This document shows, one piece after another, positions 63-59,660 of a DNA stretch of 64,000 nucleotides. The DNA lies in the NCBI RefSeq assembly GCF_023055435.1, contig NW_025963835.1:3720001-3784000 (forward strand), given 5' to 3'. Every line of letters begins with the position of its first letter. Position 1 is the stretch's first letter. The position numbers and the translations under genes are program-made. Below the pieces are notes generated by a model. It did not search any database. It had not been told where the DNA came from and worked only from the letters and a program-made list of their open reading frames with translations. Source of the DNA: Haliotis rufescens. Its lineage: Eukaryota.

Positions 63-332
63 GGGCACGGGTGGCCCAGTTGTCTGAGGCGCGCATTTCG
101 TGCATCCTTTGGACACGCCATAAACTTATGATTGTGGGTTCTAATCCCGGTTCGCCCCGATTATGTTTCTAGGTTTGTCAGCACCATACCCGCGCTCGTG
201 GGTTTCACCGAAGTGGTAAACGTCTGAGACCTGCATCACTTCAGGCTTTCCTCCCACATTAAGCTGACACGCCGTGATATAACTGGAATACTGTTAAAAG
301 CGGGGTGAAATGCAACTCACTCAATTACTCAC
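63..332 (+). mobile_element. SINE family D (tRNA-like head, RUDI/V-like body, shared tail)
   Basis: A box TGGCCCAGTTGT, B box GGTTCTAATCCC, body GGCTTTCCTCCCACATTAAGCTGACACGCCGTGATATAACTGGAATACTGTTAAAAGCGG, ACTC tail; matches copies at 30.6, 44.4 and 57.6 kb. Confidence 0.85.
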
Positions 333-1260
333 TGTCTTTAAGGATAACTCACTCACTCATTCATATGATTATAGGTAGGATTCCGGACTAATGGAGTTCA
401 GAATAATGATTCAGTCCCAGACGAATTCTGCGGTAAATTGATATGCACCAATTATAACTCGACGTTTCAGACGATTCTATTCACTGAGAAACAGCGTCTG
501 TGCATCAACCACTTTCGGACAAAACTCCACTCCGCTCTGTTCAACCCACAGGCTTGGAACTGGAATTACTAGTTTCACTAGTTTACATTACTATCACACT
601 ATACAACACAGTCTAAAGACATTTATGATTATCATATCTGTTGCAAACTTAGTTTTTATTACACCTTACAAAATCTTTTCTCAAAAACGAACGTCACGTT
701 GTACGAACTACTATGTGCGGACGGATCGGTAGGTATGCGGTTTACACTGAAGTCATAATATCACTACGCCATTGTTGACGGGGGATTATGCAGGTAACGA
801 CATAAGCGGAGGGCCCGGAATGGGAAAAGAAATCGTGTGCCATTGCGTCTATTCTTGTCCGTTCTGGAAGCCCCCTGCCCACATAGACGTGTAAATCCCC
901 AAGACACGTCTGGCTTACACGGTCTTACCCCTGACAGATGGATCTCCTCACAGCGATGACCGCGGCACCTCTTACATGACTAGGTTACACAAATATGATA
1001 TTGTCCTGACGTTAAGTCGTAGGTGTATATGACACTGAGTGGGAACAGCTGACGCATGAACGAGTAGCCGTGATATAAGCTGCTGGACAAGAGAAAGTGT
1101 TCACCTAAAAATTGGATTTGACCAAAAATTACAAAGTTTTACTCTAAGAAACGTTACCAGGCTGCAAACGTAGGATTCAGCAGTAATGGTATTCAGGGTA
1201 ATGTGTTTTCATTGTCTGCGTAAATCGCAAATTGGTGTCGTATTGACTGCATTCACTCAC

Positions 1261-2243
1261 TAGCCCAAGTTGCCCGAGTAACCCGAGTAGACCAAGTTGC
1301 CCGAGTAGCCCGAGTAGACCAAGTAGCCCGAGTAACCCGAGCAGCCCGAGTCGACCAAGTAGCCCTAGTAGACCAAGTAGCCCGAGTAGACGGAGTAGCC
1401 CGGGTAACCTGAGCAGCCCGAGTAGACCAAGAAACCCGAGCAGCCCGAATAGACCAAGTAGCACTAGTAGTCCTAGTAGCCCGAGGAGCACGAGTAGACC
1501 AAGTAGCCCGAGTAGACCAAGTAGCCCGAGTAGACCAAGAAGCTATAGTAGACCAAGTAGCCCTAGTAGCCCGAGTAGCCCAAGTAGCCCGAATAGCCCT
1601 AGTAGACCAAGTAGCCCGAGTAGACCAAGTAGCCCGGGTAACCTGAGCAGCCCGAGTAGACCAAGTAATCCGAGCAGCCCGAGTAGACCAAGTGTCACGA
1701 GTAGCCCTAGTAGCCCGAGTATACCAAGTAGCCCGAGTAGCCCTAGTAGCCCTAGTAGCCCGAGTAGACCAAGTAGCCCGAGTAGACCAAGTAGCCCGAG
1801 TAGACCTAGTAGACCAAGTAGCCCTAGTAGACCAAGTAGCCCGAGTAGACCAAGAAGCCCGAGTAACCCGAGCAGCCCGAGTTACCCGAGTAGACCAAGT
1901 AACCAGAGTAGTCCGAGTAGACCAAGTAACCCAAAAAGTCCGAGTAGGCGGAGTAACACAAGTAGCCCGTGTAACCGGAGTAACACAAGCAGCACGAGTA
2001 GCCGAGTAACACAAGTAGCCCGAGTAGCCCATGTAGCCGAGTATCCCAAGTAGCCCGAGTCGCCCTAGCAGCCCGTGTCGCCCAAGTAGCCCGATTTGCC
2101 CAAAAGCCCGAGTATCCCGGAATGCCTAAGTAGCCCTAGTAGCCCGAGTAGCCCGAGCATCCCAAGTTGTCCAAGTAGCCCGAGCAGCCCCAGTATCCAG
2201 AGTAGCCCAAGGAGCCTGAGTAGCCAGAGTAGCCAGAGTAGCC
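1261..2243. repeat. 9-bp minisatellite (AGTAGCCCG/AGTAGACCA), about 110 units
   Basis: Direct tandem periodicity; source of the GLL, TRATWS and VARVDQ ORFs. Confidence 0.95.
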
Positions 2244-2959: not shown

Positions 2960-3207
2960 GTGTGTGGGTGGGTGTGACTGTTGTTTTACGCCGCACTCAG
3001 CAATATTCCAGCTATATGGCGGCGGTCTGTAAATAATCGAGTCTGGGCCAGACAATCCTGTGAGTGACATCATGAGCATCGATCTATGCAATTGGGATAC
3101 GATGACATGCTTCAATCAAGTCAGCGAGCCTGACCACCTGATCCCGTTTGTCGCCTCTAAAGCCAAGCATAGTTGCTGAAAACCTGTTCTTACCCGGATG
3201 TTTACGG
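2960..3207 (-). mobile_element. Family B retroposon (non-tRNA structured head)
   Basis: Reverse complement of B consensus from head to tail. Confidence 0.85.
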
Positions 3208-3725
3208 TGGCCAAAATGATTTTGGTCATGGCAACTATTTTTATGCTGAACTGTGTGCCTTAGGTGTAATGACATATGTCTAAATTGAGTGATTGAATGG
3301 AATTATAAGTCACAGATAGAAATATTCCAGTTATACACGGACTTATGTAAATAATCGCGCGCGGACACTCTATTGCTGGTCGCAAAACAATTTGAATCGA
3401 TAGCCAGGCTCTGTGGTTTTGTGGCTCTGTTGACATTGTACGACGTTGCTCATATCAATCACTGGTCCAGACACAACTATTTACAGGCCGCCTTGATAGA
3501 CAGTAGAACAAAAGATAGTATACACTTGTAAACTTGATTTGACAAAAAAAATAGTAACATTATAAAAACGTTGCTAGGGTGAACAGTCGCCCAAACACTG
3601 CAAACATAGGTCCCAAACACAACAAGGATACCCGTATATGAAATCCATTGCCATCGAATAGCCATTTCTTGTTTGTTCCATTTTAGCCACCATCAAACAT
3701 AGGGGTATACTTTCTGGATGGAATA

Positions 3726-5480: not shown

Positions 5481-5733
5481 TGGTTGGTTGGTTTGTTGTT
5501 TAACGCCGCACTCAGCTATATTCCAGCAATATGACGGCGGTCTGTAAATAATCAAGTCTGGACAACACAATCCAGTGATTGATATCATGAGCATCGATCC
5601 ACGCAATTCGGATCGATAAGTCAACGAGCCTGACCACCCGATCCCGTTAATCGCCTTTTAAGACAAGCATAGTCACCTTTTACGGCAAGCATGGGTTGCT
5701 GAAGACCTGTTCTACCCCGGAATCTTCACGGGT
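5481..5733 (-). mobile_element. Family B retroposon, full length, duplicated-hairpin variant
   Basis: Matches consensus; TSD-like GTACT(A/G)TTGG on both sides. Confidence 0.9.
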
Positions 5734-5989
5734 CTCGTACTGTTGGATTGGAGTCTGTCTGATCAGTCTGTTTCAGTTGGATCAAAGGCAGATCTGATTC
5801 TTAATGGTATAGAATTAGTATTCACAACATATTACCAGAATGTTATTGGTCTCCGCATTTTTTAGTCATTATTCTTGCCATGTTACCTCCACAAAACCAT
5901 TTAGTGGTTTTAATAGGAGTGCTGTGTTGAGATCTTCGACTCAAAATGAAATAATAGCATTATCGAACTAAACCTAAACAAATCGTAAA

Positions 5990-8697: not shown

Positions 8698-8915
8698 TCC
8701 CCGTAGGAGATCCAGATTAGTGAGTATGGTTTTAAACCGCGTTTAGCAATATTCCAGCCATATCATGGCGGGGAACACCAGAAATGAGCTGTGGGGAATC
8801 GACTCTGGCCTTTGGCGTGACGAGCGAACGCTTGAACCACTAGGCTACTCCACCGCCCCTTATCCGGATTAGAATAGGCCTCATCAACCTATGCTTGTAA
8901 AAAGCGATCAACTGA
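8698..8915 (+). mobile_element. Family B head interrupted by a family A SINE
   Basis: CCCGTAGGAGATCCAGATTAG [A] ATCCGGATTAGAATAGGCCTCATCAACCTATGCTTG. Confidence 0.7.
8721..8859 (-). mobile_element. SINE family A nested in family B
   Basis: A consensus on minus strand; TSD ATCC(A/G)GATTAG. Confidence 0.85.
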
Positions 8916-17024: not shown

Positions 17025-17357
17025 TAGGTGAAGAATTTGTCTTCAGTAACCCATGCATGTTGTAAGGGGAGACTAACGGGATCGGATTGTGAGGCTCGCT
17101 GACTTGGTTGATACATGCCATAGTATCCCAATTGCGTAGATCGATGCTCATGTGACTAACGGGATCGGATGGTCAGGCTCGCTGACTTGGTTGATGCATG
17201 CCATAGTATCCCAATTGCGTAGATCGATGCTCATGCGACTAACGGGATCGGATGGTCAGGCTCGCTGACTTGGTTGATGCATGCCATAGTATCCCAATTG
17301 CGTAGATCGGGTCCAGTTAAAATAGTGTTGAGTGCGGCGTTAAACAACAACCAAACA
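17025..17357 (+). mobile_element. Family B copy with internal triplicated 83-bp segment
   Basis: GACTAACGGGATCGG units start at 17071, 17154 and 17237. Confidence 0.85.
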
Positions 17358-23869: not shown

Positions 23870-24133
23870 TTTGTTTGTTTGTTGTTTAACGCCGCACTCA
23901 CCAATATTCCAGCTATATGACGGCGGTCTGGAAATAATCGAGTCTGGACCAGACAATCCAGTAATTGACATCATGAGCATCGATCCAAGCAAATTGGATA
24001 CGATGACATGTATTAACCAAGTCAGCGAGACTGATCACCCGATCCCGTTAGTCGCCTTTTACAACAAGCAAACTCGCCTTTTACGGCAAGAATTGGTTGC
24101 TGAAGACCTATTCTACCCCGGATCTTCACGGGT
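23870..24133 (-). mobile_element. Family B retroposon, full length
   Basis: Consensus match; TSD-like ACTTCCG(A/G)AT. Confidence 0.9.
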
Positions 24134-25021
24134 AACTTCCGGATGTAGAATGGGGTTCAGGGTGTGAGACGATAGATTGATGGATGGCACATTTGAGACT
24201 GAAAGGAGGGATGATAAAGGTGTTAAAGAATGAGTTGAATGATGCTTGTTTTTTGGCGTACAAAACGTTTTTATTAGATTCGTCCCTTCTTCAAAAGCCT
24301 GGCTTTTGTCCTGCATCCGGGCAATACAAAGGTCACCCAACCTGTCATGTCAAGGTTACACTGTTCTCGCAGCGGCCGCCATGACGAACCCAACTGTATT
24401 TAACATCACCGTTCAACTACACACCCACACCCCAGATCCAAATATTCAAAGATAACGGGTTCCTATGGAATCTTCACCATCCGGTCACGTGATATCATAC
24501 TCTAGACGGTAGTCCCATCAAGGACATCAAACGCACCTTGCGGAAAGTCACATAATTTGCTCCACGTGTTGGAAACATTTCACAAGATTGCATGATCCGA
24601 GAATTACCTATCAGCGTGTATGTGTCTATGAAACGAAGCACGGTTATTAGAAGCACGTGCAGTGTGTTTATACCCTATTGACTTTGCTTCCTCCGCGCTG
24701 CACGTGATGTGGGCAGCTCGTCTCAGTGGAAATTGGCTGTTAAGATCTCTCACTGTGGCGTTATGTTCAAGGCAAATAAATACATCCATACGTTTGTTGT
24801 GCTGTCTGTAACAAAAATAAAACAAGTTTTGGGTTACAGAATCTATTAAGCTTGTCATGTCTTTGAAACTAGGCTCTTTGTGGGATGGGAGGATTAACGT
24901 ACTTTGTAATGCTAATTTGTTTGGCAGACATGTAGGAAATTGTGAGACACAGACTTGATAAGTCTGTTGTGATTAATCTCAAACGTTGATCGTGTGGCAT
25001 CAGTGACTAGTTCTTCTTTCA

Positions 25022-29304: not shown

Positions 29305-29469
29305 GTGAGTGAGTGAGTATGGTTTTACGCCGCTTTTAGCAATATTCCAGCAATATCACGGCGGGGGACACCAGAAATGTGCTTCATACATTGTACCCAT
29401 GTCGGGAATCGAACCCGGGTCTTCGGCGTGACGAGCCAACGCTTTAACCACTAGGCTACCCGACCGCCC
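29305..29469 (-). mobile_element. SINE family A, near-consensus full length
   Basis: Clean A/B boxes and tail. Confidence 0.92.
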
Positions 29470-30576: not shown

Positions 30577-30812
30577 TGAGTGAGTGGGTCCGGTTATCTC
30601 AACATTCCAGTTATATAACGGCATGCCAGCTTAATGTGGCAGGACAGCCCGAACTGATGCAGGTCTCAGACGTTTACTAATTTGGTGAAACCCACGAGCA
30701 CAGGGTTGGTGCCGACAAACCTAGAAACATAATCGAGGCGAACCGGGATTCGAACAAACGATCAATGATGTCTGACGTGCCCAAGGGACGCAACTCTTCA
30801 CAGCGAACTTCG
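30577..30812 (-). mobile_element. SINE family D
   Basis: Reverse complement of D. Confidence 0.85.
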
Positions 30813-33529: not shown

Positions 33530-33600
33530 TAGCATACTATACCCATGCGGAATGACGTTATCATTATACGCTTTAACCCGCTAGGCTTACTCCGCACGGG

Positions 33601-33843
33601 ACCCGTGAAGATCCGGGGAAGAATAATGCTGTAAAAGGCGACTATGCTTGTCGTAGGAGGCGACTAACGGGATCGGGTGGTCAGGCTCGCTGACTTGGTT
33701 GATGCATGTTATCGTATCCCAATTGCGTGGATCGATGCTCATGATATCAGCCACTGGATTGATTGGTCCAGACTCGATTATTTACAGACCGCCGTCATAT
33801 AGATGGAATATTGCTGAGTGCGACGTTAAACAACAAGCAAACT
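33601..33843 (+). mobile_element. Family B retroposon, full length
   Basis: Starts ACCCGTGAAGATCCGGGG; TSD TACTC(C/T)GCAC. Confidence 0.9.
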
Positions 33844-34247: not shown

Positions 34248-34547
34248 TTTGTTTGTTTATTGTCTTGTTTGTTTATTGTTTAACGCCGCACTCAGCAATA
34301 TTCCAGCTATATGACGGGGATCTGTAAATAATCGAGTCTGGACAAGACAATCCAGTGATTGACATCATAAGTAGCTATCTATGCAATTCGGATACGATGA
34401 CATGCATCAACCAAGTCAGCGAACATGACCACCCGATCCCGTTAGTCGCCTCTTACGAACGGGATCGTGTGGTCAGGCTCGCTGACTTCGTTGATGCATG
34501 CCATCGTATCCCAATTGCGTGGATCGATGCTCATGATGTCAATCACG
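34248..34547 (-). mobile_element. Family B copy fused to an inverted duplication of its own body
   Basis: Minus copy 34248-34457, then plus copy 34458-34547. Confidence 0.85.
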
Positions 34548-35499: not shown

Positions 35500-35757
35500 A
35501 TTTAGTTTGTTTCTTTACGCCGCCCTCAGCAATATTCCAGCCATATGACGGCGGTCTGTAAAGAATCGAGTCTGGACCAGACAATACAGAGATTGACATG
35601 ATGACCAGATTGATACGATGACATGCATCCTTCAAGTCAGCGAGCCTGACCATCCGATCCTGTTATTCGCTTCTTACGACAAGCATCGTCGCCGCTAACG
35701 ACATACATGGGTTTCTGAAGACCAAATTCACCAACTCTATCCCTGATATTCACGGGT
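35500..35757 (-). mobile_element. Family B retroposon
   Basis: Consensus match; head abuts the 33-bp array. Confidence 0.85.
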
Positions 35758-39426: not shown

Positions 39427-39681
39427 TTTGTTTGTTTGTTTGTTGTTTAACGCCGCACTCAGCAATATTCCAGCTGTATGACGGCGGTCTGTAAATAATC
39501 GAGTCTGGACCATACAATCCAGTGATTGACATCATGAGCATCGATCCACGCAATTGGGATCGATGGCATGCATCAACCAGGTCAGCGAGCCTGACCACCC
39601 GGTCCCGTTAGTCGCCTTAGTACAAGCATAGTCGCCTTTTAGGTCAAGCATCGGTTGCTGAAGACCTATTCTGCCCCGGAT
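39427..39681 (-). mobile_element. Family B retroposon
   Basis: Consensus; TSD GAAAGTCAT. Confidence 0.9.
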
Positions 39682-39799
39682 GAAAGTCATTTAATGGTTA
39701 TCCCATTGCTGAATCCCTCGATCACGGACTTGTTACAATACTAGTTATTTTAATCGGGGCATTTATTTGATTTACTATTCAAATATTAAGTAAATTTTG

Positions 39800-42499: not shown

Positions 42500-42687
42500 G
42501 TCGAGTCCTCTCAAAAAGCATTAAAATAGTACTTGTTGTTATCCTGCCTGCCGCTCGGAATAAAATGGGGGTAAAAAAGGATTGGTTGGTTTCAAGTCAT
42601 ACGTGTGTTTGAGTGGGGTGTACAATCATGTATATGCATGTATGCTACTCTGCGGCAGGGTATCTCAGTGGGCTAGTACTACAAGCA
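42500..42687 (+). mobile_element. SINE family C, degenerate Meta-like body
   Basis: AGTACTTGTTGTTATCCTGCCTG...GTATCTCAGTGGGCTAG. Confidence 0.65.
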
Positions 42688-42922
42688 ACCCGTGAAGACT
42701 CGGGGTAGGATAGGTCTTCAGCAACCCATGCTTGTTGTAGTAGGCGACTAACAGGATCGGGTGGTCAGCCTCGCTGACTTGGTTGATGCATGTCATCGTA
42801 TCCCAATTGCGTGGAACGATGCCCATAAATCCCTGGACTGTGTGGACTCGATTATTTACGGACCGCCATCATACAACTGGAATATTGCTGAGTGCGGCGT
42901 TGAACAAGAAACAATAAAAACA
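42688..42922 (+). mobile_element. Family B retroposon
   Basis: Starts CCCGTGAAGAC; full consensus. Confidence 0.88.
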
Positions 42923-43088
42923 AGTACAACAACCCACATCGGTCTAACGCTTAGTATCTGAAAAATATACTTTTGCTATAAACAAGCTACAATATTTAAA
43001 CTGACATGGAGCCCCAGTGAGATGGGAGATTCAGAAACTGTATGTACAGAAACTGTTATAAAACAAACCGTGTATGCTCAAACATGGA

Positions 43089-45456: not shown

Positions 45457-45683
45457 TGTTTGTATGTTGTTTGACGCCGCACTCAGTAGTATTCCAGCTG
45501 TATGACAGCGGTCTGTAAAGAATTGAGCCGGGACCACACAATCCAGTGATTGACATCATGACCATCGATCTACGCAATTGGGATACGATGACATGCATCA
45601 ACCAAGTCCGCAATCCTGATCACCCGATCCCGTTAGTCGCCTAAGCAGGGATGCTGAAGATCAAATATAACCTCGTCACGGGT
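45457..45683 (-). mobile_element. Family B retroposon
   Basis: Consensus match with head deletions. Confidence 0.85.
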
Positions 45684-45779
45684 TACATGTAACAGGACCG
45701 TAAGGACCGATAATATTCTATCCTGATGTTCTTTAGGCTTGCAAGAAACGTGTGATTGTGGCTTAGATTATATTTCTTG

Positions 45780-52712: not shown

Positions 52713-52914
52713 TGGTTGGTTTGTTGTTTAACGCCGCACTCAGCAATATTCCAGCTATATGACGGCGATCTGTAAATAATCGAGTCTGGACCACACAATC
52801 CAGTGATTAATATCATGAGCATCGATCCACGCAATTGGGATCGATGAACGCATCAACCAAGTCAGCGAGCCTGACCACCCGATGCCGTTAGTCGCCTCTT
52901 ACGACAAGCATGGG
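52713..52914 (-). mobile_element. Family B retroposon, 5'-truncated
   Basis: 14-bp TSD GGC(G/A)AC(G/A)CCTTAGA. Confidence 0.9.
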
Positions 52915-53455: not shown

Positions 53456-54567
53456 CCAAATGAGCAGGAAACATCACGATTATAATCTATTGATTCATTC
53501 AGTAGAGATTATATCTTTACATCATATTTCATGATTTATGAAAACACAGTTACAATCTCTAACTAACTGGTCCACTATCAAACATCCTGCGAAGCTTCCC
53601 ATCCTAAAGTCATCCCAGAGGCGAATCCATGATGTAGAGTACATCGCTATCAGTGCATAGCGCCATCCCCCAGCGCGCAGTAACAATATAACGAATTCCA
53701 TCTATTGCCACGTTTTTGTCACATGTTCGGCAGTTTCCCCTGCCTTGGTCTCAGTGGTACGAGCATTAATTAAAACTATGTTTACTCGGGAGCTTGACCT
53801 TTCGGATCATATTGGGCAGAACTGCTAAAAAGCTGCGTCTATGTATTATCGTAATGTTAGCGTGTCTTTCTAGGGCAACTGTCATTGTAAGAGTTTGAGA
53901 TCAGCGTATTCGACCATTGTATGCAGTAATTGACTTGGCGAGTACTGGATATTGCCATTAGATCGGAACTGATTGGAAACAAGGTTTTGTGTGTTTCTTT
54001 TGGTGGTATTGTGATGTGGAAAGTTTGAAAGGAAACGAAAATGTCAACTGTCAATCATTGTGACATTGTGTATAGTGGGACCTTACTAATCCGCACCTTT
54101 AAGTTCTCCCGTTTAAAGATTGCACGTCTGGACGCGTCAATGTTCTAAGGCAAAATATTGAACGAATGAACGATATTAACGTCATCCAGCAGTAGTAAAA
54201 CTCACTCATTCCCCAACCAACTCAACAACGCACCCAGTCACCCAACGCCCCACCCACTCACTCACCCGCATTCACCCATCCACCCACTCCCTACCCACCC
54301 AACGCCCCACCAACTCACTGACTCACCCAGCCACCCTATTAATACCGGCAACTTCTCAACTTCTCACTATAACAACACACTCAGAGTATACACACTCAGA
54401 GAAGACATGGAAGGGTCACTGTCTAAACATAAAAATGGTCTTTAAGAACCAAAATATATAGACAAGACATTTCAGTGTATTCAGTGTTTTAGTTAGTTAT
54501 TCCTTAACACAATATCAGTACAGTTATATTCGTCAATATATCCAGGAGTGTCTGTTTGCACTTGCCT

Positions 54568-54780
54568 ACCGGTGAAGATGCGGGGAAGATTAGGTCTTCA
54601 GCAACCCATGCTTGCCGTTAGAGGCGAATAACGGGATCGGGTGATCAGCTGATTTGGTTGATGGGTGCCATCGTATCCCAATTACGTCAGTCACTGGATT
54701 GTGTGGTCCAGACTCGATCATTTACAGACCGCCGTCATAAAGCTGGAATATTGATGAGTGCGGCTTTAAAAAACAAACAA
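54568..54780 (+). mobile_element. Family B retroposon
   Basis: Consensus match. Confidence 0.85.
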
Positions 54781-55229
54781 TATCTTTGCATGAAATATTT
54801 ACGACTGCCAACATACGTGGTGCTATACGTGCCTATCTTCATCACTGGGAATCAATGTCTGGGCTCCATCCTCAGACGCTCAACATCCACTCACCTGTGG
54901 TAATATACAGATCTGAAATAGAACAGTCCACACATGTTTACCTCCCAATCTTATACGCTGTCTATACTGTTAACTAAAGTGTTTTGCTTTCTATACAATA
55001 TTTACCCATCTTCCGCATCAACCGCCGGTGTATACGTCGTGTTAACCCCACGAAAGAAGGAAGTGATGCGACGGCACAAACTCCACGAAGTCTATACAGA
55101 TTTGTTTATTCATGTTTTTTCACAGCAAATGCTAAAGGTGTTATTTTGTTGATAACATATGTGCGCAAAGGATTTTCCATCTTTACGTAGATGTGCGCAA
55201 TGGGGATGGAAACAGATTGTTGGCACGGA

Positions 55230-57574: not shown

Positions 57575-57845
57575 GTGAGTTAGTGAGTGAGTTTGGTTAA
57601 CGCCAGTATTCCAGTTATATCGCGGCGTGTCAGATGAACGTCGGAGGAAAGCCCGAAGTGATGCAGGTCTCAGACGTTTACCACTTGGGTGAAACCCACG
57701 AGCACGGGTATGGTGAAGAAAAACGTAGAAACATAATCGGGGCGAACCGGGATTCGAACCAACAATCATAGGTTTCTGTCGTGCCCAAGGGACGCAACTC
57801 TGCACAGCAAATTGTGGCGCTTTAGACAACTGGGCCACCCATGCC
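57575..57845 (-). mobile_element. SINE family D, full length
   Basis: Reverse complement of D. Confidence 0.88.
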
Positions 57846-59283: not shown

Positions 59284-59427
59284 CCACACCACTCCATTCT
59301 TTCAGTCTAATCCGGTTTATATCTAACAGCGGTAGGGGGCGTAATGTTCTCGTTGTTTTCAAGGCAGGTGTTGGTCGCCCTGATCTTAATTTATTGTCCC
59401 AATCCGACTGCATTAAAAGCTTTGTTC

Positions 59428-59660
59428 TCCGTGAAAATTCGGGTTAGAAAAGGTATTCAACAACCCATGCTTGTCGTAAGAAGCGACTAACGGGATTCGG
59501 TGGTCAGGCTCGGTGACTTGGTTCCTGGATGTCGTGGGATCCCAATTGCCTAGATCGATGCTCATGACGTAAATCACTGGATCGTCTGGATTATTTACAG
59601 ACCGCTGCCACAAGGGTGGAATATTGCCGAGTGCGGCGTTAAACAACAAACAAACAAAAA
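59428..59660 (+). mobile_element. Family B retroposon
   Basis: Consensus match. Confidence 0.85.

Follow-up and report, generated by a model that had tools for sequence, protein, structure and literature searches.

A short retroposon family of Haliotis rufescens with a fixed 5' end and a non-tRNA head of plausible RNA structure

Family B in the window and in the genome

The window analyzed here, i.e., the whole stretch of 64,000 nucleotides of Haliotis rufescens contig NW_025963835.1 from position 3,720,001 to 3,784,000, contains at 42687-42925 (+) one copy of a short repeat that we refer to as family B. With the region 42661-42960 as BLAST query, 19 further pieces of the family were found in the window, and the 22-mer singled out in the preliminary description occurs nine times at up to three mismatches, versus zero expected from 100 shuffles. 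The earlier observation of a repeated ~250-bp element with TSDs holds, the TSDs being 10-16 bp long. Head, body, and tail are common to 12 aligned copies from the window, and the element measures 235-260 bp. Its parts follow each other in the order of a ~72 nt head, a ~115 nt body, a 45-nt tail stem-loop (CGCCG...CGGCG), and (ACAA)n/(CCAA)n repeats. A consensus-like copy contains neither AATAAA nor a run of four T. The copies and the parts of the flagged copy can be found in Table 1.

Table 1. Positions of family B copies, of the parts of the flagged copy, and of a family A comparator in the window
Feature	Position	Strand	Remarks
Flagged family B copy	42687..42925	+	old, single-unit; head, body, tail stem-loop, A/C-rich end; ~85% identity to nearest relatives
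Head module of flagged copy	42687..42760	+	position 1 is A (G in 71% of copies); 3' strand of closing stem mutated, ACAGG
Helix S2	42694..42719	+	5' strand, 11-nt G-rich loop, 3' strand GGUCUUC; sole helix with compensatory support at subfamily level
Hairpin S3 AGCA/ACCCA/UGCU	42720..42732	+	ACCC loop able to pair with GGGU in S2 loop
Hairpin unit S4 UGYCGUAARAGGCGAC	42733..42749	+	most conserved stretch; duplicated as 22-nt unit in young subfamily
3' tail stem-loop CGCCG...CGGCG	42862..42906	+	common to tRNA SINE families
Family B copy, 22-nt unit duplicated, full 5' end	5491..5734	-	
Family B copy, 22-nt unit duplicated, full 5' end	23875..24134	-	
Family B copy, full 5' end, internal head deletion	33600..33840	+	
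Family B copy, full 5' end	35507..35757	-	
Family B copy, full 5' end, head degraded	45460..45691	-	
Family B copy, single-unit head	54567..54782	+	
Family B copy, single-unit head, GGGUU loop variant	59426..59659	+	
Family B copy, 5' end unrecognizable before S2 loop	59037..59281	+	
Family B copy, degraded single-unit head	2981..3210	-	
Family B copy, duplicated unit, disrupted 5' end	39428..39690	-	
Family B copy, 5'-truncated within head	52719..52914	-	
Family A tRNA-derived SINE	29310..29465	-	last ~45 bases (tail stem-loop) common to family B; comparator and positive control

Several other sequences in the window are related to these copies. At 17039-17354, sequence from inside the SINE has been amplified locally in tandem: three head-to-tail repeats of a segment of the family B body (model positions ~54-166) precede a tail fragment. 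A degraded piece of the head stands isolated at 8862-8914 (+), with no recognizable family B body after it, and at 34260-34534 two inverted body fragments adjoin (34451-34260 on the minus strand, 34455-34534 on the plus strand). A third abundant family of short retroposons is found at 150-310 (+), 57597-57750 (-), 30601-30740 (-), and many loci; it has a related tail stem-loop (CGCCGUGAUAUAACUGGAAUACUG...) and (ACTC)n ends as in family A.

Genome-wide, at least 5,918 first-look candidates of family B were counted in the assembly (1.33 Gb, 615 contigs), and almost all of the best 40 of these candidates start at base 1 of the query. The bodies of copies picked by a body search are 96-98% identical to one another, indicating that the family was recently active. 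Thousands of occurrences were also found in contigs of two other organisms, where the depth steps at the same two boundaries and unrelated flanks start at the same first base of the element. Family B is a LINE-mobilized retroposon with thousands of copies. In half of its full-length copies, including the youngest, a 22-nt unit is tandemly duplicated within the head, while the flagged window copy has a single unit; the head as it had been drawn in the preliminary description does not fit the copies with the duplication. The tail stem-loop is common to family B, to the tRNA-derived SINE of family A, and to the third abundant family, in agreement with the earlier statement that the 3' tail is that of the tRNA SINEs. 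It is presumed to be the recognition site for the reverse transcriptase of a partner LINE; a search for this LINE by way of the tail returned only SINE families A and B and the third one.

For the analysis of the 5' end, copies were chosen by their body alone, so that the selection was independent of the head. The same 5' end is reached by 27 of 31 body-selected copies. Among 69 bystander copies, i.e., those lying in retrieved flanks or in the window, 32 to 36 reach model positions 1-12 and the rest stop at scattered places. TSDs of 10-16 bp (mode 12-13) were detected at 50 of 97 full-length copies, compared to 3 of 97 in a control with mismatched flanks. Since the TSD directly abuts the G preceding ACCCGUG in 41 of the 50 TSD-bearing copies, we place the start of the element at this G (G1), with which 71 of 100 heads begin. 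The fixed 5' end that had been proposed therefore stands, but the start base had been placed one position too far downstream.

Small-RNA libraries of the same species (6 and 109 reads) contain no reads marking the 5' end; the reads mostly form a sense/antisense pair in the body. In the family B body at L040:1565-1607, small RNAs pile up on both strands, with the sense start at 1565 and the antisense start at 1607, and this pair looks like the siRNA/piRNA type.

Fold of the head and variation between subfamilies

The minimum-energy fold of consensus-like copies gives all four stems of the fold proposed earlier, with z-scores of -0.5 to -1.2. The flagged window copy folds differently (z-score +1.23), and the folding energies of the head are not better than those of shuffles. 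Across 37 single-unit copies, pairing reaches 90% and equals that of shuffled controls, i.e., no covariation beyond shuffling was observed. This absence of a signal among copies is uninformative, because it is expected for neutrally decaying copies. An RNAalifold analysis of five diverse heads was unusable since MAFFT misaligned the distant head, and the CM alignment of heads tracked sequence rather than structure.

Variation between subfamilies gave a different result for helix S2 (GAAGAUCC/GGUCUUC). An older subfamily of the same genome, B2, has GGGGAU...AUCCCC in place of the GAAGAU...GUCUUC of the main family, and it thereby carries two compensatory pairs (GGGG/CCCC), two A-U pairs having become G-C and one U.G having become U-A. 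With exact anchors, the combination GGGG+CCCC was matched 30 times (~24 independent) and the combination GGGG+CUUC, in which G.U pairs are kept, 26 times (~14 independent), while GAAG+CCCC, which has A.C mismatches, gave six real matches. Since several of the GGGG+CUUC copies carry the B2-type loop, this form is a real intermediate. The B2 and main heads differ at nine positions, and at least two compensated pairs among nine random substitutions with transition bias arose in 0.9% of trials (p ~0.009). Thus S2 is supported as a helix kept by compensatory substitutions between amplifying subfamilies.

The other elements of the proposed fold fared less well. In B2, the loop of S2 changes from GGGGUAG to GGGUUAG and that of S3 from ACCCA to ACCUA, and loop-loop pairing is possible after a shift by one base. 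Two of the five pairs of the closing stem CCCGU/ACGGG (S1) are broken in B2, where ACGGG has become AAUGG, while an alternative closing helix of nucleotides 2-6 with CGGGU at 72-76 is intact in both the main family and B2. The hairpin GUCGU/GCGAC (S4) is broken by a C.A mismatch in 16 of 36 copies, owing to one common U/C polymorphism; moving the register by one position, to UGYC/GGCG closing a GUAARA loop, accommodates 35 of 36. Of the four stems, S2 is hence retained, S1 and S4 as drawn are not supported, and S3 together with the loop contact is suggested by single cases. We regard an RNA structure of the head as plausible.

Parts of the head also occur in tandem arrays. At G000:C24:42604348-42607480 (L079-L081), a satellite consists of dozens of repeats of 11-bp units GGCGACUAAC(A/G)G, in which the 3' portion of the head hairpin is joined to the closing strand, and shorter arrays of head units are found at L033 and L074. 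Two further arrays have a period of ~49-50 bp, with a unit containing S2-S3 at G000:C46:5984083-5986416 and S3-S4 at G000:C594:22496314-22497106; as these two inflate pattern counts, each was counted once.

Known RNA classes and relatives of the head

Searches of the window against Rfam at the gathering threshold matched only the tRNA head of family A. When the family B element and its head alone were searched at E values up to 10, no tRNA, HDV-like, twister, twister-sister, hatchet, pistol, hammerhead, or SRP match was obtained, and only chance matches to snoRNAs and miRNAs appeared; the HDV, CPEB3, and drz models did not match the head at E up to 10 either. This agrees with the initial failure to map the fold onto HDV, hammerhead, twister, or pistol ribozymes, and self-cleavage is indicated neither by a match to any known ribozyme family nor by small-RNA reads at the 5' end. 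Layouts were also compared directly. An HDV layout, which requires the nested double pseudoknot P1-P2-P3-P1.1-P4 with the 3' strand of P1 in the middle of the motif, was rejected, as the only complement of nucleotides 1-7 lies at 65-71 or 72-76, at the 3' edge of the module. A twister layout was rejected because the conserved loops GUCCCAAGC, GUAAA, and GAGGG (PMC8501958) are absent and the P2/P4 layout is not reproduced. By-eye threading led to rejection of a tRNA layout, and an SRP-Alu layout bears by eye a loose resemblance only, in the form of two neighboring hairpins with a GG/CC loop contact.

Promoter motifs were likewise sought in a consensus-like copy. In line with the preliminary description, A and B boxes are both missing at up to two mismatches, and an Inr/DPE pair and a TATA-like motif were not found at the expected places. 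ARAGORN did not detect the family B head at normal or relaxed (70-80%) thresholds, while it found the family A head when relaxed. Family B thus lacks the tRNA cloverleaf with A and B boxes that characterizes SINE2 elements, and, as the preliminary description had it, a tRNA head; its first ~70 bases are a separable module.

The description of the head as uncharacterized does not hold for it as a sequence module, since the same kind of head was reported in 2016 for the LP-SINEs, Haliotis included (PMC4758252). These are TSD-flanked, repeat-ended short retroposons of Littorina, Haliotis diversicolor, H. midae, Ostrea, Saccostrea, and scallops (Matetovici et al., 2016; PMC4758252), and over their first ~70 bp (68-70) they share homology with the 5'-terminal ~70 bp of the LINEs Nimb-17_LMi, I-3_DR, and RTE-9_CPB (PMC4758252). 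Reports place the module on LINEs belonging to two clades, with hosts among the insects, fish, turtles, and molluscs, and in Saccostrea a body and tail that otherwise come with a tRNA head bear the LP head instead (PMC4758252). The authors proposed that it is a LINE promoter and drew a parallel with the promoter-ribozyme Pr77 of L1Tc/ingi (PMC4758252). A full-text literature search for LP-SINE terms returned only this paper, and a search with sequence words gave chance matches only. Family B shares with the LP-SINEs that it is short and non-autonomous, with variable TSDs, 3' tandem repeats, a head that is not derived from tRNA, 5S, or 7SL RNA, and a tail shared with tRNA SINEs.

Searches with the head pattern retrieved two contigs (L091 and L092) from a metagenome scan and none from the genome and viral collections. 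L091 (OBLZ010058271.1) carries a homologous head on an unrelated body, with a CM score of 25 bits; its match in S4 and the 3' strand is what the search pattern had selected. Its S2 reads GUUG.../...CAAC, and its S3 is formed by CCAG/CUGG around UACCC, compared to AGCA/UGCU around ACCCA in family B, so that the ACCC loop is kept. In its own minimum-energy fold, a longer closing helix is preferred and S3 is kept. In L092, the head is incomplete, and C-G takes the place of a G-C pair in its S3. The element in L091 lies at 1140-1337 (-), with the divergent head and a body containing CCUUCAGAUGAGACCGUGUAACGACCC, which we take to resemble the Nin-DC/Deu-type SINE domain, as in the Saccostrea LP-SINE. 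The mention in the preliminary description of a similar motif at the 5' ends of other invertebrate retroposons agrees with the Nimb and RTE LINEs of the literature and with one metagenomic contig.

A LINE carrying the head was sought in the abalone genome with a pattern for the end of the head without the body, and all 99 matches were deletion, truncation, or satellite variants. Two sequences considered as different head carriers turned out to be a truncated copy beside single-copy DNA (L077) and a B2 copy (L093). An RT ORF was not found in any of the retrieved sequences. A scan of the genome for RVT_1 showed that candidate LINEs are present. Two LINE families with dozens of copies have uninterrupted frames of 1260 and 1279 aa around the RT domain, examples being C556:46093961-46094716 (+) and C579:1818748-1819503 (+) in G000. 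These two families are evidently very young, and they are candidate partners of the SINEs described here.

Possible roles of the head and comparison with known systems

The head might be a self-cleaving ribozyme of an undescribed class that cuts just 5' of G1 from read-through host transcripts. This would be in line with a 5' end fixed at a G and abutting the TSD, with the lack of recognizable promoter motifs, and with a compact multi-helix fold that has possible loop-loop pairing, a compensated S2, and, in L091, an S3 re-made with another stem around the same ACCC loop. There are precedents in six LINE clades (PMC5786205), HDV-like ribozymes for R2/RTE, and twister variants in Perere-3 (PMC8501958). 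It is at odds with the missing matches to the HDV-like, twister, twister-sister, hatchet, pistol, and hammerhead families at E up to 10, with an HDV topology that cannot be threaded because the partner of P1 lies at the 3' end of the module, with a closing stem that is not conserved, and with an ordinary folding energy. In addition, the most prolific subfamily tolerates a 22-nt hairpin inserted in the junction. We consider such a ribozyme, and self-cleavage of the head in general, unlikely. Less probable again is that the head is a new 5'-terminal processing RNA, a four-helix junction with a G-rich/ACCC loop-loop contact that would be cut exactly at its first base by itself or by a host enzyme and shared by Nimb/RTE LINEs and SINEs from molluscs to insects and vertebrates. 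That the 22-nt unit is duplicated in the most prolific subfamily and that the folding energies are ordinary argues for a promoter, or against a compact catalytic core.

The head may also act as DNA only, as an internal promoter, either of pol II or of an unconventional pol III type, in which GAAGA...UCUUC is a palindromic factor site and the fold is incidental. A promoter is what the authors of the LP-SINE study proposed (PMC4758252), the duplication of the 22-bp unit resembles the multiplication of promoter units, and the folding z-scores are ordinary. The inverted-repeat symmetry of S2 could indeed stem from a dimeric factor that binds a palindrome in the DNA, and palindromic half-sites would change symmetrically, as seen. 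However, the G.U-keeping intermediate is represented by ~14 independent copies versus six of the A.C type, a difference that is not significant, the S3 of L091 is still a hairpin despite an entirely different stem sequence, and canonical Inr, DPE, and TATA elements are absent. The compensated helix with its G.U intermediates and the re-made S3 point to a role at the RNA level, and we regard the DNA-only reading as possible but doubtful. The 5' RNA of R2 controls second-strand cleavage. By analogy, the head could be an RNA platform for the partner LINE protein, a host nuclease, or a stabilizing factor that aids integration or RNA survival and does not set the 5' end, and the many full-length copies and the conservation of S2 and the loops are compatible with this. 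Short SINEs are mostly full length anyway, however, family A SINEs with the same tail spread without the head, and recognition by one LINE protein sits poorly with a head reported from two LINE clades as well as from SINEs whose tails differ (PMC4758252), so that a platform is quite improbable. Because the head is reported with various tails and on LINEs of more than one clade, and the tail occurs without it in family A, a host-directed function in transcription or processing is favored over binding of a LINE protein. A degenerated tRNA-derived pol III head of 72 nt with a cloverleaf-like shape, to which the size, the four-helix junction, and the by-eye resemblance of GGGGUAGA to a D-loop/A-box might point, is the least credible reading and is largely refuted already: the Rfam tRNA model does not match the 87 nt searched at E up to 10, ARAGORN at 70-80% finds the family A head and not that of family B, A and B boxes are missing even when two mismatches are allowed, and the junction spacing and loop sizes are unlike those of tRNA.

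The explanation that we prefer, and that we consider fairly probable as a whole, is an LP-SINE with a promoter-like head whose transcript folds; among the readings of the head, a promoter with a folding transcript is the most likely and a DNA-only promoter the next. A partner LINE would copy family B through the 3' stem-loop and the repeat end, and the head, replacing the tRNA-derived pol III head, would ensure that the RNA begins exactly with base 1 of the element irrespective of the insertion site. The mechanism that we favor is a promoter situated internally, downstream of +1, such as those of I/jockey-type LINEs and L1Tc Pr77; it would itself be transcribed and thus carried along in each round. 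For these elements, internal promoters in the first ~100 nt are established. The transcript would also fold, with the S2 and S3 hairpins and a contact between the G-rich and ACCC loops, and may in this form serve a step at the RNA level, i.e., 5' processing, stability, or translation-independent recognition. We lean slightly towards a functional RNA fold; that the head is a promoter has close to an even chance, and the two are not exclusive. As the literature reports the same ~70 bases from LINEs of two clades, some basic task in the formation of the 5' end must fall to the module. Against the preferred explanation stand the pattern search that retrieved no LINE with the head from this genome, the absence of an Inr, DPE, or TATA-like motif at the expected places, folding energies not better than those of shuffles, the lack of copy covariation beyond shuffling, a closing stem not conserved in B2, the 22-nt insertion tolerated in the junction by the most successful subfamily, and small-RNA reads that do not mark the 5' end.

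What defines SINEs is a pol III head acquired from a small RNA, and LP-SINEs are the exception. Should the head be a promoter, a SINE would here be driven by an internal promoter of pol II type, which is rare; should it turn out to be a ribozyme or an RNA processed by the host, a new class would be added to the 5'-processing elements of retrotransposons. The genome studied here offers natural mutants of the head in thousands of copies, with a young subfamily carrying the duplicated unit and an older one carrying the compensated helix.

Among known 5' modules, Pr77 of the trypanosomatid LINE L1Tc/ingi and its non-autonomous NARTc/RIME resembles the head in its length (~77 nt), in its position at the extreme 5' end, which it defines, and in being common to otherwise unrelated autonomous and non-autonomous elements. 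It differs in adopting the fold of an HDV-like ribozyme, with which the family B head is not compatible, and its promoter activity has been shown. The HDV-like ribozymes of R2, R1, R4, RTE, and LOA (Eickbush, 2010; Ruminski, 2011; as cited in PMC5786205) share with the head a G as first base, the same position, and the irrelevance of the upstream sequence, whereas the head has no nested double pseudoknot, has the partner of its 5' strand at the 3' end of the module, and has no Rfam match. The twister variants of Perere-3 in Schistosoma provide a ribozyme for a non-site-specific LINE of the RTE clade and are TSD-adjacent like the head (PMC8501958). Bipartite non-autonomous LINEs such as RTE-N, RIME, SIDER, and WALLSI3, a concept under which elements of this kind have been framed, combine a LINE 5' end with a LINE 3' end and have no ORF, and their transcription by pol II is presumed; six LINE clades with 5' ribozymes are listed in the same paper (Kojima, 2018; PMC5786205).

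The closest likeness is to the LP-SINEs (Hdi_LP/Hmi_LP, Lsa_2, Oco/Oed_LP, Sgl_LP, and the pectinoid MESC), which like family B are short, TSD-flanked, tandem-repeat-ended elements of molluscs with a non-tRNA head of ~70 bp at the extreme 5' end and a tail shared with tRNA-derived SINEs. As an element kind, family B has therefore already been described. By its anatomy, length, and host, and with the LP-SINEs compared by their description, it is most likely the abalone representative of this group, and it can also be viewed as bipartite non-autonomous LINE-like. No RNA structure is given in the LP-SINE paper (PMC4758252), and to this family B adds a partial, partly supported structural model of the head, a subfamily with a duplicated unit, and a compensated subfamily that provides natural compensatory variants.
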